Positions 26,424 through 63,932 of a DNA stretch of 64,000 bases are shown in pieces. Below the pieces are notes generated by a model. It was not told the DNA's origin, did no database searches, and worked only from the letters and a program-made list of their open reading frames with translations. Source of the DNA: Podarcis melisellensis (Eukaryota); NCBI GenBank assembly GCA_964234715.1, contig OZ174282.1. One strand, given 5' to 3'. The stretch's first letter is position 1; each line of letters begins with the position of its first letter. Made by a program: the position numbers and the translations under genes.

Positions 26424-27368
26424 ATGTCTGTGCCATCACCCCTGAGGGTGCTGCCCAGCCCCCCGAATGCCACTGCAGGCATTCCCGTGAGCAACCAGAC
26501 CAATGAGACATTCTGCACAAGCAGCCAGCAGGTAGTGATCCCTGGCGAACTCTTCCTGACCCTGGGGATCCTGAGCTTTGTGGAGAACTTGTTAGTGGTG
26601 GCCGCCATTGTCAAAAACCGGAACCTGCATTCGCCCATGTACTATTTCATCTGCTGCCTGGCTGTGTCAGACATGCTGGTGAGCGTCAGCAACCTAGTGG
26701 AGACCCTCTTCATGCTTCTGCTGGAGCATGAGATGATGGTTGTGCAGCCCACCACCGTGATGCACCTGGATAACGCCATGGACATGCTGATCTGCAGCTC
26801 CCTGATGTCCTCGCTCTCCTTCCTCGGCGTCATCGCCATTGACCGCTACATCACCATCTTCTACGCCTTGCGGTATCACAGCATCATGACCATCCAGAGG
26901 GCCGTCACCATCATCGTGGTTGTCTGGGTGGTCAGCAGCATCTCCAGCACCATCTTCATTGCCTATGATGGCAAGGCGGTCATCCTCTGCCTGGTCATCT
27001 TCTTCCTCTCCATGATCACCCTGATCATGGGCCTCTACATCCACATGTTCAGCCTGGCTCACCAACACGCCCGCAGGATCTCCAGCCTGCAAAGGAAGCA
27101 GTCAGCGCCCCACTTCACTAGCATGAGAGGGGCCATCACCCTCACCATCCTGCTAGGGGTCTTCTTCATCTGCTGGGGCCCCTTCTTCCTTCACCTGATC
27201 CTCATCCTCACCTGCCCCGAGAAGCCCGCCTGCAACTGCTACTTCAGATACTTCAACCTCTATCTCATCCTCCTCATTTGCAACTCTGTGGTGGACCCCA
27301 TAATTTACGCCTTCCGGAGCCAGGAGCTCAGGAGGACTTTGAAAGAGGTGGTCTTATGCTTTTGGTAA
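26424..27368 (+). CDS. MC1R: Melanocortin 1 receptor, 314 aa, intronless CDS
   Basis: GCCACCATG Kozak; 7-TM class A GPCR with melanocortin hallmarks [22 protein letters not shown](140-142), [14 protein letters not shown]-terminal LCFW; acidic ligand residues E93/D116/D120; N-glycosylation sequons N15, N24, N27; syntenic between TCF25 and TUBB3. Confidence 0.98.
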
Positions 27369-27467
27369 GGAGCAGGCGGCAGTGGGGGTCTGAGGGTGCA
27401 AGTAGCCACTGGGGCTCTCCTGCCCTCCCCAGAGGCAGCAGAGGCAGCCACTTTGCAATTGGGAGCT

Positions 27468-27486
27468 CAGCGCCCCCTGGTGGCAC
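27468..27486 (-). promoter_or_regulatory. CTCF-binding motif in the MC1R 3'UTR
   Basis: Minus strand GTGCCACCAGGGGGCGCTG; the 15-bp core CCACCAGGGGGCGCT equals the CTCF consensus core. Confidence 0.7.
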
Positions 27487-27570
27487 TGGGGATGGGCAAG
27501 CAGAGGAAGCCTCTGGGAGGAGGTACCAGGCAGCGTTTGCCACATCCCACGGCCAGAAGGAGGAAACAAA

Positions 27571-27595
27571 GTGTGTGTGTGTGTGTGTGTGTGTG
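27571..27595. repeat. (GT)12 microsatellite in the MC1R 3' region
   Basis: Seen directly. Confidence 0.95.
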
Positions 27596-27822
27596 CGTGC
27601 GTGCAGTGGGGAGGGACGTTCTTTTGCTTCCTGACTGCCTTCAGCCTAGAGGCATGGCTGAGATGTTGTATAACTCTGCTATTTCCTTGCTAGTGATCTA
27701 GGGAAACCATTCGTTCTTCCTCTGTGAGCGCTCCAGGGCGTTCCCATCAAGGTGTGCAGAGCAGAGGGTGAGGATGACAATGGCAGGTGCAGCAACATTT
27801 TCCCAATGCAGAAGAAGGAAAA

Positions 27823-27850
<28 letters not shown>
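27823..27850. repeat. (GT)14 microsatellite in the MC1R 3' region
   Basis: Seen directly. Confidence 0.95.
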
Positions 27851-27853
<3 letters not shown>

Positions 27854-28116
27854 TGGCTGTGTACACACTCCCAATTGCGCTGCATCCAGTGCACAACAAC
27901 CTTTGGTTTGGGAAGTGGCATACAAGTGATGTTAACCACAACCAATATTGATCCTCTCCTTTCTGAGGAAATGCTGTGTTTTGATGCATTCCCCACCCCG
28001 CCCCCCAAACCAGCTCCGATTTGACTTGTGTAAAGATACGGCCGCACTGTGTTTTAAGCCAGTAATGTGTGCACAGCCTAAATATGTGTTTTGTATGTCA
28101 AGGAGCTTTGCAGGGT

Positions 28117-28122
28117 AATAAA
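28117..28122 (+). terminator. Candidate MC1R polyadenylation signal
   Basis: First AATAAA I found after the MC1R stop (~750 nt downstream); G11 run at 28197-28207. Confidence 0.6.
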
Positions 28123-28558
28123 GAGGAATGTTTCAGAGTATGTGTGCCCCTTGTGAACTGAGCAACTGCAGGAGGGCTCTACCTGTCTAGGAGTACGGGG
28201 GGGGGGGTGTCCAGTTTAGAGATGTGGACATCTTTTCCTAAAGCCATTTCAGCACTGGAAGGAAACACCCTAAAATTTCAGATGCTGCAAATATGTCCCC
28301 CTGCATTCTCATAAGACCCGACTGGCAGCCTCTGACTGTGTTTCAGAGGACTTCCCTCCCTCCGTCTTCTGACTTCATGTTTGCAGTCTCTACAAATCAA
28401 TGCAACTCAATAAGTTGCAAAATGGTGCCTCTGCCCATATCTCAACCCTTTGTCCAGAATTCTTACAACATTGTCCTTTCACTGAAAAATAGGCCTGAGT
28501 GATGCTCTGTGCTTATGTGAGATTATCTTTCTGAGTGGATCTCTGATTCCCTTACCTG

Positions 28559-28698
28559 TTTCAGTGTATCTGAAGAAGTGTGCATGCACACGAAAGCTCA
28601 TACCAAGAACTAACTTAGTTGGTCTTTAAGGTGCTACTGGAAGGAAAAATTTTGTTTGTTTTGACTATGGCAGACCAACACGGCTACCTATCTGTAAC
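28559..28698 (+). mobile_element. Penelope-like element terminal fragment (copy 1)
   Basis: TCTGAAGAAGTGTGCATGCACACGAAAGCTCATACCAAGAAC...TTAGTTGGTCT.TAAGGTGCTACTGGA...CAGACCAA.ACGGCTACCTA; second copy at 60279-60427; flanked by 11-bp direct repeat TCCCTTACCTG (28548-28558 / 28699-28709). Confidence 0.7.
28566..28603 (+). ncRNA. Minimal type I hammerhead ribozyme motif (Penelope-type)
   Basis: Stem I GTAT(28566-69)/ATAC(28600-03); core CTGAAGA(28570-76) plus one extra A; stem II GTGTG-CATG-CACAC(28578-91); GAAA(28592-95); palindromic AGCT mini-stem III; predicted cleavage after CUC (C28599). Confidence 0.7.
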
Positions 28699-31600
28699 TC
28701 CCTTACCTGAGTGGATCTCTGCTTGTTCCGGTTTCCATGTCCTGCAATAGGTGGTTGTAGCATCCCTTACCTGGTGGCTGGGCTACCTTGGGCCAAGCCT
28801 GGAGGAAGCATCAGGGACTCACAATCCTATCTAAATTACTGGTAGTTCCTTTTCAGAACATGCTAATTAAAGTAGGAGTCAGTCTTCAGATTCATGGTGC
28901 CCAAAGCACAGGAGCCTCCTAGTGTTGCATCATATGTCACAGATGGGAGTTGCCTGTAAGGAACCTCACACACATATCCCTGTCCGGTCCTGTGCCATAG
29001 GGATGCTTCCATGCAAAACAAGACAAGCCATAGCTCATTCCAGGCATCACCCCTAGTAGATAGGACAGTAGCATAGCCCTCCTAAAGAAATGACTCTAAA
29101 TCCAGAAAAGAGCCTTGCTATTTACATCCAGAGCTTTACCAACTGGGCAAACTCTTATTCCGTGCCACATAATAACAAACTTCAGTGGCATTGCCGATTT
29201 TGATCTTAAGGTTTGCTCTTAAAAGCATATTGTAGGTCTGAGCTGAGGTTCTTTCCTAAGATAGCAGGAGCAAACTCCTAAAAGCACAAGGAGAGCCCTG
29301 CTGGGAACCCAACAGGCCCTGTATTCTAACATCCTGCCTCCCATAGTGGCCAACCAGATGGCAATGACTTTATGCGCAGGGAGGCTACACATAGCCTCCG
29401 TTGGCTAGCAGCTGTTGGTCAGACTTCCCTCCCTTCAGGAATGTGTATTCTGAAGTATGCACAGGTGTACCTAGGGGTTGGTGAAACTGGCTCCCTCTGG
29501 GGCACAGGCCTGGGCAGGTGCACAAAAATCACCTATCTGGCTATGGAGTGTATGACATGCATGTGTGTGGTGAACCAACACCGTTGTTACAGTGAGATCA
29601 AACATGGGAGAAGCTTCCCATCCTTCTCACACCATGGCACAAAAGTGTGCAGTGAAGTGATGGGGGTGGCATCAATACAGCTCCTTGCCAAGGGTGCAAG
29701 GGACCCTACAAATGCCTCTGGGAGCATGCCCCCCAGAAGTGGGTGACCAGGAAATCCAAGTCCGATGAAGGACAGTTGTCTCCCATTCACATGAAGGGCT
29801 GTCGCACACAGAAGATAGTTCTTCTCTGTTGCTCCAGAATCAGTGGCTGGAAAAGGCAGAAAAGTAGACTTCAATGAAACATGAAGAAGGCCTTCCAGAT
29901 AGTGGCAGCTGTTCAGCAGTGGTTTGGGAGCTGGTGGGTTCTTCTTCACTCAAGAGGAGGTTGAGCAGCCATCTCACAGGGTTGTTGTAATTATATTCTG
30001 CATTGCAGGCCCCGTAGGGCAGGAGCAGGAGGTGGGGCTAAGCAGCCTTCAAAGTCCTATCTGATGCTGTGATTCTAAAAGCATCTGAGCCAAGAGTTCC
30101 CAAACTGGTTTACGGCATTTCTGTGGATTTGTGGTTAAAGGCAAGAGACAGCACATCTATTGCATAAAAGATTCATACTGCATTTTAAGTGCTTCTTTTG
30201 TTTATTATATTGAATTACAATTTGAATTCAGTGGAATACAAAGATGTGATTTAAAAATGCAATTAAAAATCACACAGCATCTAGTACAGCACAACACAAT
30301 TGCTTCAACAGACAGACAACACCATTAACCATTTTCTGAGGGCCTGAGTGGTTTGGGAACCATTGCGCTAAGCCACATTGTGCAGAATACAAATCATGGG
30401 TCAGGATGAGGGAGACAGGAGGAGAGATGAATGGCTTGTTAGAAGGTGTATTCCGGAGAGCATAACAACTCACTTGCAACACTGTATAAGAAGCAAGTTC
30501 AGTGGGTATTTTTTGTGGGGTGTTGTCTTTCTCATATGCACCAACTGTGTGCATTCTCAGACACAAACACACAAATACAGAATGCTGGGGAGAAGCACAC
30601 AGCACTTTTATTCCACCTTCTTATTATCTGATACACAATATTTTGTAGGTTTTTGTGGTGCATGTGGCATAAATGTTCAGCTAGCAGCTTCCGTGTGGGA
30701 GTGGAAGTTGCGAGGGGGCTGGAACTATTTCTAAGAAGTGAGAGCTCCATCTGACCAGGGGCTTTTGTTTTGTTTGAGCTCTGCCACAATGAGTCATGCC
30801 TATGGGGGGGGGGATTGGGTTCTACTCCCAGCCATTCAGCAGTCTGACTAGTCTCTGACACGCCACTCCCCCTGGGAGGGAAGAGGGCCTCATTTCCCTC
30901 CTGTCTCCTGTCAGTGGGCTGCAGCTGAGGCACCAGAACAAAATCACAGGGTCCTTTGCATGTCCACCTCTGCCTCACATGCCTACCCATTGCCCATGCA
31001 CACCTGATGTATCATGCATATGGAGCATCCCTTGGCAATGGCATAAAAATTCCATGTGCAAGTCTGTCACTCATGAGGCAGGCTGGCAATCCAGAGCATC
31101 CCTTCTACCCCTCCCTCCATTCACAAGCTCCTGAGCAGCAGACACATACATGTTCTGTGGCACTCCCTCCCCCCACCCCTTGTTATGCAGCAGCCTGGTT
31201 GTTCTGGAATGTGCGCACCATCTATTGCCTGGAGGTGGCACTGGTGTTTGCTGCCTTTGCCCTTCAGGTCCTCTTGGGCAAACGTCCTGAGCTGGTTCTA
31301 TGTCCCCATCCAGGGAAACACCATTGCTCAGTGGTAGAGGACCTCCTCTCCCCTGTTCAATCTCTGGTGTCTTAAGGTAAGGCTGGGAATGTCTCCTGCC
31401 TAAAACCCTGGAAAGCTGCTGTCAGTCAGTGAGACAGTACTAAGCTGGCAATCATCTGATGCAGCATAAGGCAGCTTCATATTATTCCGGCAGGGTGGCT
31501 AACCTTTTTGTTAGGGAAGGACCTAAGTTCAGTGCTAAAATAACAGCAGCTTTGCATGCAGAAATGCCTGGGTTCAAGTATGGCTGAGAAAAGACTCCTA

Positions 31601-35317: not shown

Positions 35318-42937
<7,620 letters not shown>

Positions 42938-47948: not shown

Positions 47949-48140
47949 GGAAAGGTCATTGCTCAGTGGTTAGAGCATCTGCTTTGCATGCAGAAGACCC
48001 CAGGTCCAATCCCTGATGGTATCTCCAGGGAGGGATGCAAAAGGCTCCTTAATCTGAGCTCTTGGATAGCAGCTGCCAATCAGTGTAGACAGTATAGAGC
48101 CAGTTGTATCAATGGTCTTACTCCTTTGTATATTCCTATA
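47949..48140 (+). mobile_element. tRNA-headed SINE with CR1-like tail
   Basis: GCTCAGTGGTTAGAGCATCTGCTTTGCATGCAGAAG...CCAGGTCCAATCCC (A/B boxes) followed by a non-tRNA body. Confidence 0.65.
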
Positions 48141-60278: not shown

Positions 60279-60427
60279 TTCAGGTATCTGAAGAAGTGTG
60301 CATGCACACAAAAGTTCATACCAAGAACAAACTTAGTTGGTCTCTAAGGTGCTACTGGACAATTTATTTATTTATTTTTATATACTGTATTTCTACTGCG
60401 TCAGACCAAAACGGCTACCTACCTGAA
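60279..60427 (+). mobile_element. Penelope-like element terminal fragment (copy 2) with mutated hammerhead motif
   Basis: Homologous to 28559-28698; GGTAT-CTGAAGA-A-GTGTGCATGCACAC-AAAA-GTTC-ATACC (GAAA changed to AAAA); ends bounded by inverted TTCAGGTA / TACCTGAA. Confidence 0.7.
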
Positions 60428-60559
60428 ATCCACATCTGCATAAATAGGTTTGGGGTGGGGAGATGTACTCCTCACCCCAGTAAAATGCCTCAAGAAATTA
60501 GCATTTCACGTGTACTAAAGCCATTATTTCGCCTTTCATCCGCTGGGCTCTGACAAAAT

Positions 60560-61300: not shown

Positions 61301-63932
61301 CCCCACTGCTCAGCAATAGTAGGCCACACAGCAAGGAGGATATCTTATGCCTGTTAATACATGCCCCTATCTCAACTGTAGCTGTCTTCCTTCTTCAACA
61401 TGGGAATAATTACCCTTTAATGCCCCTGAACTATGGGGATCATGGCACAAAGTCTTTCCTATAGGACTAGCACAAGCCACTCTCAGCTTCACCCTAGGCT
61501 GCACACTGGCAGAGACCCTCCCATGGACTTTTCCTGGGATAATGCTAGTTTTCAGCTTCTGGTTTTAGAATTCCTGGTGCACAAACTATTCTGCATACAG
61601 AACTTTATGGATACTTGGTTTTGAGGCCTTTCTGGCCACTGTGTTGCATATTTGTACCTTTGACCTTGCTCAAAAGAAAGGAGGAGGAACCCTTGCTGGC
61701 CCTCAGGAAACCAATGCCGCCCTTTGCTCTTTTCAGTGGTGTGAGAGAGGCCATCCAGGATGTGGCATGTCCTTCCATCACTGGCTGTGCTCCAAGCCTG
61801 AAGGTATGTGACTCCAGCAGAAAAGGGCTGGCGCTTCTTGTTTGTGACTCTGTTGAGAAGAAGAATGTCATGAGATTTTTTTCCTGCTTAATTGTAGAGC
61901 ACATTATTTGCATATAGTAGGTCTCAACTTCCATTTCTGGTACATCCCTTTAAAATAATCTCAGGCAGCAAGGCTGGCAAAAACATTTGGTGGTGCCCTT
62001 GAAGCCTGCTGTCAATCATGATAGACAGCCTCAGCCGTCATCACTGAAGCTTTTCTTCAGGCAGGTTTATACTTACTGACTTACCAGCCTCCCATCAAGC
62101 TCTAAGTGTATTGTGTGGGCATAGAAGGTTGATATTGAGGCACTTCTGGTCATTTCAGCGTTAGGGAAGTAGAGCATTGTGGCAGCGGTGGGGACCTTGT
62201 CGTGTAGTATAGAGGCTAGAAAGAATAAGACTGAACCTGTCAACAGTGAGATATGTTTTTGTCCTGCAGGCTTTGAGAAGAAAGATGAAAAGAGACAGGG
62301 TCCAACAGAGGCAGCCCCTGATAATAAAGGTAAGCACCTTCTTTTCCATGGCTCGGTTATAGAGCATCTGCTCTTCACGCAGAAAATCCCAGGTTTGATT
62401 CCTGGCATTATTCTCCATGTAGGGCGGGAAACGCTGTCTGCACAAAACCAGAGTGCCGCTGTCTAGTGGTGCAAACAGTCCTGAGTGAGATGGACCTTCA
62501 GTGGTCTGGCTCAGTACAAGGCAGCTTCCTTTGTTCCTATGTTCTTCCCCCTCATTTACTTCCCTAAAGTTGGTGAATGCCTCCCATTCCGAAAACTGGT
62601 CCATCTCTCATAAATCTCCCCAACCTGTTCTGCTCCCCCTCTACAATGCAGCCAGAAGCCTTTTAAAGCCTAACGTATAAGCATTTCTATTTTTTCTCTC
62701 CTTCCTAGAGCCTATCGGCTCCAAAAATCCCAGTCTTCCCAAAAATACCCGGGGAAGCAGTGGTGGAGAAGGCAAGAGAGGAAGGAAAGATGAGGATTTG
62801 GGGTGGTGGAATCACATGCAGAAGGTATGTGACCATTTTCTCTGTTGCATTTATGTCACTGAAATGTCCTAAAGCTGCTGGAATCGGGGATGGCTAAAGC
62901 AGAAAAGAAAAATGACACAATGATAGCAGCCATATTAATTACCTACTTTTTGCCCCCAGGGAGAGTTCCCTTGGGATAATAAGGACTCCCGGTACCTGAT
63001 TGTCATGGGAGCTGGCATCCTCACAGGGTTCTTCTACCTCTACTACCGAGATCCAGGCAGAGAAATCAGCTGGAAGCACTTTGTGCATTACTACCTGGCC
63101 AAAGGACTGGTAAGGCAACATGTGGCAGGCCATCCTCTTGCTGGGGGCGGAGGGCAGCTCATGTATGTATGTATTCTATTCTATTCTAGCAGTAAAGTGT
63201 AGGCACCTGGAGGAGACATTAGGAGCAGGAGAGTAAATAGGGGTGATTGCCCTTTGCTAGGAGTTCTCTGCGGCCACAACATACCATTTTGTACTCAAGT
63301 GAAGCTCCACCCAGAAAGATTCACTCTCACTCTTTCTGGCCCTGTCCACACCATAGATTTAAAGCACTCTTATACCACTTTAACAGTCACAGCTCTCCCC
63401 CCCCCCCCGATATATGGTGTAGATGTGACCTCTCCTTCCTTCCTTCCTTCCTTCCTTCCTTCCTTCCTTCCTTCCTTCCTTCCTTCCTTCCTTCCTCTTA
63501 AGGTGGATCGACTGGAAGTGGTGAACAAGCAGTTTGTCCGGGTGTTCCCAATCCCTGGCGCCACCTCAGAGGTAAATAATTCCAGGGGACAGAGGGATGA
63601 GGTGGAGAAAGACAGTGGATGCCCACAATCACTGCTCCAGTCTGCCACAGTTAGACCTTTGGAAGAAAAGCTGTGTGTGTTTAAGGCACAGCAGTCTGGT
63701 GGCAAGAGGGTTGGGTCCATAGAGGTCCCTTTCACACCTGAAACAAGAGAAGGCTCTGTGTATGCCAGGGGGCATGAAAAATCAACACCTGTCCTTGGTT
63801 GCCACAGAAGCACATCTGGTTCAATATTGGCAGTGTGGATACCTTTGAACGAAACCTAGAGGCTGCTCAGCTGGAGCTGGGGATCAGCAGCGCCCAACAA
63901 GTGTCTGTGGTCTACAGCACCGAGAGTGATGG
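60764..63932 (+). CDS. AFG3L1: AFG3-like m-AAA mitochondrial protease subunit 1, 5' part (7 exons; gene continues beyond the window)
   Basis: Exons 60764-60868, 61737-61803, 62270-62329, 62709-62824, 62960-63109, 63503-63571, 63808-63932, open and in phase. [74 protein letters not shown] match recalled mouse Afg3l1 better than AFG3L2; position after DEF8 matches the human AFG3L1P locus. Confidence 0.88.
62345..62545 (+). mobile_element. tRNA-headed SINE with CR1-like tail in AFG3L1 intron 3
   Basis: Same family as 47949-48140; GGCAGCTTCCTTTGTTCCTATGTTC tail. Confidence 0.6.
63433..63496. repeat. (TCCT)16 microsatellite forming the polypyrimidine tract of AFG3L1 exon 6
   Basis: Seen directly; ends 6 nt before the exon start at 63503. 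Confidence 0.95.

Follow-up and report, generated by a model that had tools for sequence, protein, structure and literature searches.

A young, probably neutral retroposed copy carrying a Penelope-type minimal hammerhead motif lies downstream of MC1R

The interval between MC1R and TUBB3 in the 64,000-nt stretch of Podarcis melisellensis DNA analysed here (the window) contains a minimal hammerhead ribozyme motif on the strand of both genes, which raises the question of whether the motif takes part in ending MC1R transcription or was simply carried there by a transposon. In humans, the poly(A) site of MC1R is weak and transcripts are spliced into TUBB3 (PMC3064779, PMC4676704), and a sequence-only reading of the window had proposed a transposon-donated ribozyme terminator that would limit MC1R-TUBB3 chimeras, with a neutral insertion as its fallback. 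The gene features that frame this question are:

26424-27368, plus strand: MC1R coding sequence, 314 aa
28117-28122, plus strand: AATAAA, candidate MC1R poly(A) signal
35318-35374, plus strand: start of TUBB3 exon 1 (MREIV...)

The AATAAA at 28117 is the sole one from the MC1R stop codon to 28866, and the motif starts 449 nt, and is predicted to be cut 482 nt, downstream of it. TUBB3, with its last exon around 41876-42900, runs on the same strand as MC1R and the motif, and its exon 1 begins 6.7 kb beyond the motif in an MC1R-TUBB3 spacer of ~7 kb. The geography on which the terminator proposal was built, namely a sense-strand motif some 480 nt past the MC1R poly(A) signal, thus holds for this candidate signal. 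An ATTAAA is also present at 28866, 267 nt downstream of the predicted cut site; its use by MC1R transcripts would place the hammerhead within the 3' UTR instead of behind the gene. In addition, two (GT)16 microsatellites (27571-27603 and 27823-27855) occupy the presumed MC1R 3' UTR, where contigs break in all sequencing runs, and a run of 146 N (42649-42794) falls inside the last TUBB3 exon.

The motif itself was delimited from its letters and by a descriptor search:

28566-28603, plus strand: minimal type I hammerhead motif

Read on the plus strand as GTAT/CTGAAGA/A/GTGTG-CATG-CACAC/GAAA/GC/TC/ATAC, it opens with a 4-bp stem I (28566-69 with 28600-03) that does not extend further, followed by the CUGAAGA box (C3-A9, 28570-76) and an additional A at 28577 that forms a bulge between positions 9 and 10.1. 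Helix II and its loop (28578-91) consist of 5 bp and a CAUG loop, are closed by G10.1 (28578) and C11.1 (28591), and together form a perfect 14-nt palindrome, GTGTGCATGCACAC. The GAAA (G12-A15.1) follows at 28592-95, then G15.2 and C16.2 at 28596-97, U16.1 at 28598 and C17 at 28599, which places the predicted cleavage point at 28599|28600. The AGCU at 28595-98 is its own reverse complement and represents a palindromic helix III segment. All of the catalytic-core boxes (C3-A9, G12-A14, A15.1-U16.1 and an H17 that is not G) are present, and the earlier statement that every element of a minimal type I hammerhead can be found here is borne out both by the letters and by our own descriptor.

In this descriptor, stem I and helix II each had to reach 4 bp, with a G-C pair closing the latter; the core boxes and a palindromic helix III were likewise obligatory, and a bulge was permitted. 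Applied to both strands, it identified a single site within the 64-kb window, 28566-28603, and no match in 300 random 64-kb sequences of equal first-order composition; a looser hammerhead pattern would be expected to occur 0.05 times per window. Of the two motif searches that had been suggested, the descriptor search therefore returned the motif, while the search with Rfam Hammerhead_1 did not: no Rfam hammerhead model, including Hammerhead_1 (RF00163), matched anywhere in the window at the gathering threshold, nor on 28400-28800 at E<=10. The absent Rfam score is expected, given that the motif does not include the helix III hairpin which these models expect, and is not counted against it. Two weak Rfam matches on 28400-28800, SSRC10 (E 3.8) and NEAT1_2 (E 6.6), were discarded as noise.

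The motif does not stand alone at the locus. It heads an interspersed repeat of ~133-143 nt, inserted between two copies of a short target-site duplication, and a second copy of the same repeat is found near the far end of the window:

28566-28698, plus strand: repeat body common to both copies (alignment of the two copies and contig ends)
28548-28558, plus strand: left target-site duplication, TCCCTTACCTG (repeat search and contigs)
28699-28709, plus strand: right target-site duplication, TCCCTTACCTG (repeat search and contigs)
28559-28565, plus strand: TTTCAGT, 7 nt between the left duplication and the repeat body
28673-28682, plus strand: AC-rich motif AGACCAACAC, near the 3' end of the insertion
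60284-60429, plus strand: second, decayed repeat copy (alignment with copy 1)

Within the repeat body, the hammerhead leads into 40 conserved nucleotides (28604-28641); an AT-rich stretch that varies comes next, and the 3' end is AC-rich (CAGACCAACACGGCTACC..CTGTAAC). The direct repeat that brackets copy 1 is 11 nt long. The two copies are ~90% identical over the conserved blocks, being nearly the same in the hammerhead and the next 40 nt and again in the last ~30 nt, with the AT-rich stretch varying in between. In copy 2, the hammerhead (60284-60321) has decayed through a GAAA to AAAA change (G12 to A) and a GCTC to GTTC change (C16.2 to T). Copy 2 is flanked by CCACA at 60264-68 and 60430-34, and its 5' junction holds 15 additional nucleotides, among them CTTCAGAT, an inverted copy of the bases with which the element begins. 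The 5'-junction fillers of both copies are complementary to those first bases; in copy 1, the UUUCAG at 28559-64 is complementary to the CUGAAG of the catalytic box. The TTTCAGT to which it belongs (28559-28565) may also be a 5' extension of the element, since ~40 contigs per run carry family sequence back to 28556.

The scale of this family becomes apparent when the contigs of three whole-genome runs are aligned to 27400-30000. Each of the three genomic runs yielded between 9,300 and 10,400 matching contigs, nearly all of them on 28531-28704, and summed contig depth, which does not equal copy number, reached 2-2.8 million over the repeat against ~30 in the flanks. Per run, ~73 contigs diverge from the window just before 28566 and ~80 just after 28699, and these positions hence mark the usual ends of the repeat family. 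Joints that run backwards, e.g. 28646 to 28566, reveal ~80-nt tandem units of the repeat elsewhere in the genome.

The window also contains other repetitive sequences. Another interspersed repeat occupies 29490-29700, where summed contig depth reaches as much as ~5,000 compared with ~30 on either side; internal stretches of 20-190 nt are skipped by many contigs, which suggests a family with variable internal deletions. Two tRNA-like matches to the Rfam tRNA model, both on the plus strand (47952-48024, 41.6 bits; 62349-62405, 32.6 bits, partial), share AGAGCATCTGC and a CCCAGGT..CCTG arm. As the second of these is partial, they may be the heads of tRNA-derived SINEs rather than tRNA genes.

The architecture of the insertion, read against the literature, gives good grounds for deriving it from a Penelope-like element (PLE) or from a non-coding passenger of one. 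Minimal hammerheads (min-HHRs) were described in the pseudo-LTRs of metazoan PLEs by Cervera & De la Pena 2014 (PMC4209133), along with traits that their search descriptor had not imposed, including a conserved G10.1-C11.1 pair, a palindromic 15.2-16.2 and a short helix I; all four of the listed PLE min-hammerhead traits are present at 28566-28603. The marks of the class are likewise found here, i.e. the A at 28577, the G28578-C28591 pair, the palindromic AGCU at 28595-98 and many copies per genome. As in the published min-HHRs, in which the palindromic AGCU can pair only between two copies, and which occur mostly as scattered single motifs in truncated elements, very many per genome and with reptiles among the carriers (PMC4209133), the motif sits in a short and highly repeated sequence. 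Unlike in Schistosoma, where helix II spans 7-8 bp (PMC4209133), helix II here is limited to 5 bp with a CAUG loop. The coding part of such an element was not found in the vicinity: no flanking reverse transcriptase ORF was seen for the repeat family in the window, no full-length element with a reverse transcriptase and a GIY-YIG endonuclease bears the motif in these 64 kb, and a Pfam search of 6 of the 15 ORFs of at least 170 aa, chosen away from the MC1R and TUBB3 loci, returned no family.

A close structural parallel is with Poseidon_Ac (PAc) of Anolis carolinensis (Frangieh et al. 2024, PMC11167929), in which the hammerhead straddles the junction between pseudo-LTR and ORF. Both share a layout, in PAc CTGAGGA, T, helix II, GAAA, CG and TC: the bulge is a single nucleotide, the helix III insert consists of two nucleotides that form a palindrome, and the cut site is UC. 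Reverse transcription of PAc starts internally, at an AC-rich stem-loop 111-118 nt into the ORF, i.e. 85-92 nt past the cut (PMC11167929), which leads to genomic copies with a fixed 3' end. The copies compared here similarly end at a defined point less than 100 nt past the cut, at or near an AC-rich motif: the distance from the cut is 76-83 nt for AGACCAACAC and 99 nt for the end of the copy. Judging from layout, not from sequence, AGACCAACAC would be comparable to the ACAACACA region where PAc reverse transcription begins. The two differ in that no sequence similarity extends outside the core, and no 13-mer of the repeat was found in the supplement of PMC11167929, which includes the PAc consensus. 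They differ as well in coding capacity, the PAc ORF starting at A9-U-G10.1, where the triplet here is AAG and the first ATG lies in loop II at 28584; the frame of this loop II ATG is open throughout copy 2 and meets a stop after 9 codons in copy 1. The target-site duplication, the family-wide 3' end at 28698/99 and the inverted piece at the 5' junction are nonetheless those of PLE-type retroposition.

Animal non-LTR retrozymes and tandem hammerhead repeats (PMC7229834; bioRxiv 10.64898/2026.07.22.740005) offer a second parallel, being non-coding, hammerhead-bearing and PLE-related, and the repeat family studied here also forms ~80-nt tandem units elsewhere in the genome. The MC1R locus differs in holding one monomer and no tandem array, so that the dimeric ribozyme and the circular-RNA route are unavailable there. 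Taken together, architecture and literature support the earlier suggestion of a Penelope-type minimal hammerhead that would be expected to work only as a dimer.

The age of the insertion can be gauged from sequencing runs of the same and of related taxa. Contigs of run X17 enter the element from both flanks and show 0 differences from the window over 1.6 kb; given these zero differences, run X17 is of the same species, and perhaps of the same sample. A different arrangement is seen in run X1 (organism A, ~4% diverged, with 52 differences in 1,302 nt), which covers intergenic DNA evenly at a depth of ~11 and thus behaves as DNA. In record 4 of this run, a 3.2-kb contig joins 28547 directly to 28699, and so does without exactly 151 nt, corresponding to the insertion and one copy of the duplication, while keeping a single duplication copy. 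This junction is the signature of an unoccupied target site. Two other taxa, organisms F and G, both ~1.7% diverged from the window, are also empty at this position: record 18 of run X20 and record 24 of run X22 join 28530 directly to 28707, without 176 nt, i.e. the same 151 nt and a 25-nt unit of a local repeat (CTGAGTGGATCTCTG..). This local repeat (CTGAGTGGATCTCTG[A/C]TT..), at 28531-28555 and 28707-28724, is found in the reference and in organism A and is missing in F and G; its gain or loss is independent of the retroelement insertion.

The simplest history is an insertion in the reference lineage after its split from F and G. In F and G, the empty state could in principle have arisen secondarily, by deletion between the 18-nt direct repeats that lie at 28531 and 28707, but such a deletion does not account for the precise, single-duplication empty site in the more distant organism A, which favours true absence. 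The insertion is therefore lineage-specific, being absent at this site in three related taxa, and a host 3'-end element conserved at the locus among relatives is not what these three empty sites display. Its intact core thus reflects youth, not host selection, and with three relatives lacking the insertion, the element is neither conserved nor needed to keep MC1R and TUBB3 apart.

Whether the lone motif would cleave depends on its fold. Helix I (4 bp) and helix II (5 bp) are able to form, while helix III in cis would need a single A-U pair to close a loop of 2 nt, a steric impossibility; helix III forms only with a second copy, and a single motif does not provide the three helices of a hammerhead. 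The only other copy in the window lies 31.7 kb downstream, beyond TUBB3, with a mutated core, so that no usable partner is available on the same transcript. For the isolated 38-mer, the stem I/stem II fold is predicted at -6.0 kcal/mol against an optimum of -6.8, while with 30-200 nt of flanking sequence on each side the hammerhead-competent fold makes up 0.04-0.09% of the predicted ensemble and is predicted to be 4.3-4.9 kcal/mol worse. In the predicted minimum-energy fold, the CUGAAG of the catalytic box (28570-75) is instead paired with the upstream UUUCAG (28559-64).

The dimer of the 38-mer is predicted to pair via the 14-nt helix II palindrome (-30.6 kcal/mol) and not via AGCU, an arrangement that we judge to be non-productive since helix III is still missing from it. 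The intermolecular AGCU/AGCU helix is predicted at about -3.9 kcal/mol when scored as an isolated helix, the productive dimer being a crossing (kissing-type) arrangement, and all of these secondary-structure predictions ignore tertiary contacts and proteins. Published assays point in the same direction. No cleavage in vitro could be detected for a single Schistosoma min-hammerhead, and dimers and trimers were slow to cleave (PMC4209133); a review describes PLE hammerheads as inactive as monomers and cleaving as dimers (PMC6765202). With the Anolis hammerhead, cleavage occurred only once the element's protein had been supplied; this protein-dependent activity called for RNA reaching 172 nt into the ORF, and RNA-seq gave no ends at the cut site (PMC11167929). 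From these predictions and assays, we expect little or no self-cleavage of MC1R read-through RNA.

The reading that best accounts for these observations, and in which we place high confidence, is that the 3'-terminal "tail" of a PLE, or a non-coding passenger of one, was recently retroposed behind MC1R as a short and probably neutral copy, with no termination role. Retroposition would have inserted a copy of ~133-143 nt, with a target-site duplication of 8-11 nt, behind MC1R, and this copy would have carried along the minimal hammerhead motif of its family, whose core would have stayed intact through the recency of the insertion and not through host selection. As a lone monomer of a class that pairs two copies through AGCU, it would be unable to build helix III, and its CUGA box would be held in the predicted hairpin with the upstream UUUCAG. 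MC1R read-through RNA would then be cut little or not at all, with no role for the motif in termination. We infer the PLE parentage from architecture and literature, and the inactivity from predicted structure and from assays on other PLE hammerheads. The kind of sequence is one already described, a Penelope-type hammerhead-bearing transposon tail, and the fallback offered by the sequence-only reading, a neutral insertion, is the one favoured by the evidence.

A variant of this history, which we regard as improbable, is that the neutral copy does undergo low-level, unselected cleavage, assisted by a protein of the family or by pairing in trans with family transcripts, so that some of the read-through RNA would be nicked to no benefit of the host. 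In its favour, the core is intact, transcripts able to act as partners may be present in nuclei given how hugely the family is repeated, a protein assists the Anolis PLE hammerhead, and dimers of min-hammerheads cleave slowly in vitro. Such occasional cleavage would however have to rely on an intermolecular AGCU/AGCU helix of only about -3.9 kcal/mol, in competition with a best predicted dimer that pairs the helix II palindromes and in which helix III is missing. Assistance by a protein meets a similar difficulty, as activity in Anolis needed 172 nt of the ORF, while the inserted copies here end ~115-123 nt after the equivalent point, and even in Anolis no RNA-seq ends mark the hammerhead site.

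Still less probable, and to be held only as a very long shot, is the proposal of a lone hammerhead that cleaves MC1R read-through RNA as it is being made, at 28599|28600, and that owes its retention to helping termination and limiting MC1R-TUBB3 chimeras. Its appeal lies in the intact core, in the sense orientation of the motif 449-482 nt past the AATAAA and 6.7 kb before TUBB3 exon 1, and in the human precedent of a weak MC1R poly(A) site with splicing into TUBB3 (see above). Retention is difficult to reconcile with the insertion being missing in three related taxa, and cutting with a monomer that has neither a partner copy on the transcript nor a helix III, with a catalytic fold disfavoured by 4.3-4.9 kcal/mol in context, and with published PLE hammerheads that are inactive as monomers or protein-dependent. 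The position of the copy is also unremarkable: in a family abundant enough to have left two copies in a 64-kb window, a sense copy in a 7-kb spacer calls for no special explanation.

The chemistry of hammerhead cleavage argues against this proposal as well. Its products bear a 2',3'-cyclic phosphate and a 5'-OH, the latter being expected to be a poor substrate for Rat1/Xrn2 (PMC3241649, PMC2702688), while the substrate of the torpedo exonuclease is the 5'-phosphate end generated by the poly(A) machinery (PMC7614299). In mammalian tandem reporters with efficient hammerheads placed between them, the downstream reporter was still expressed, i.e. the ribozymes did not keep Pol II from the downstream gene; the authors considered that the hammerhead cut might let the polymerase escape Xrn2, short-circuiting the torpedo (PMC2702688). 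Given the 5'-OH product and these reporter data, an active hammerhead 450 nt past the poly(A) signal would, if anything, hinder torpedo termination, although a cut in the RNA, provided that it occurs, could still part MC1R from the exons of TUBB3. RNA-cleaving elements in or after the 3' end of Pol II genes do exist, as exemplified by the discontinuous hammerhead of the rodent Clec2 3' UTR and the beta-globin CoTC element, both of which are conserved at their loci and have complete, active folds. The motif next to MC1R differs from them in being lineage-specific, in being devoid of helix III and in belonging to a mass-copied transposon family. Overall, the claim of a transposon-donated terminator that limits MC1R-TUBB3 chimeras finds no support in the empty sites, the missing partner, the disfavoured fold or the literature.

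The faintest probability attaches to a chance match without ribozyme ancestry, which would fit the absence of any match to Rfam hammerhead models even at E<=10, but not the lack of descriptor matches in 300 random sequences, the fixed position of the motif in a repeat family that is present once more in the window and matches thousands of contigs, or the PLE min-hammerhead traits that were found independently of the descriptor.

With a short, young and probably neutral PLE-derived copy as the preferred reading, the case shows that host function should not be read from the intact ribozyme core of a recent transposon copy, and that the chemistry of the hammerhead, with its 5'-OH product, fits the torpedo model of termination poorly. 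There is a very slight chance that, in the reference lineage, the hammerhead does cut usefully in vivo, by way of a protein, a chaperone or pairing in trans, and measurably alters MC1R read-through or MC1R-TUBB3 chimeras relative to the empty-site sister taxa; if this were true, it would amount to a natural experiment in which a locus could be compared before and after a ribozyme had been placed downstream of its poly(A) site. The site itself matters little, as one more copy of a known ribozyme-bearing transposon tail of which the genome holds very many. Its filled allele in the reference species and the empty alleles of close relatives nevertheless form a natural contrast for the effect of a lone Penelope-type hammerhead.
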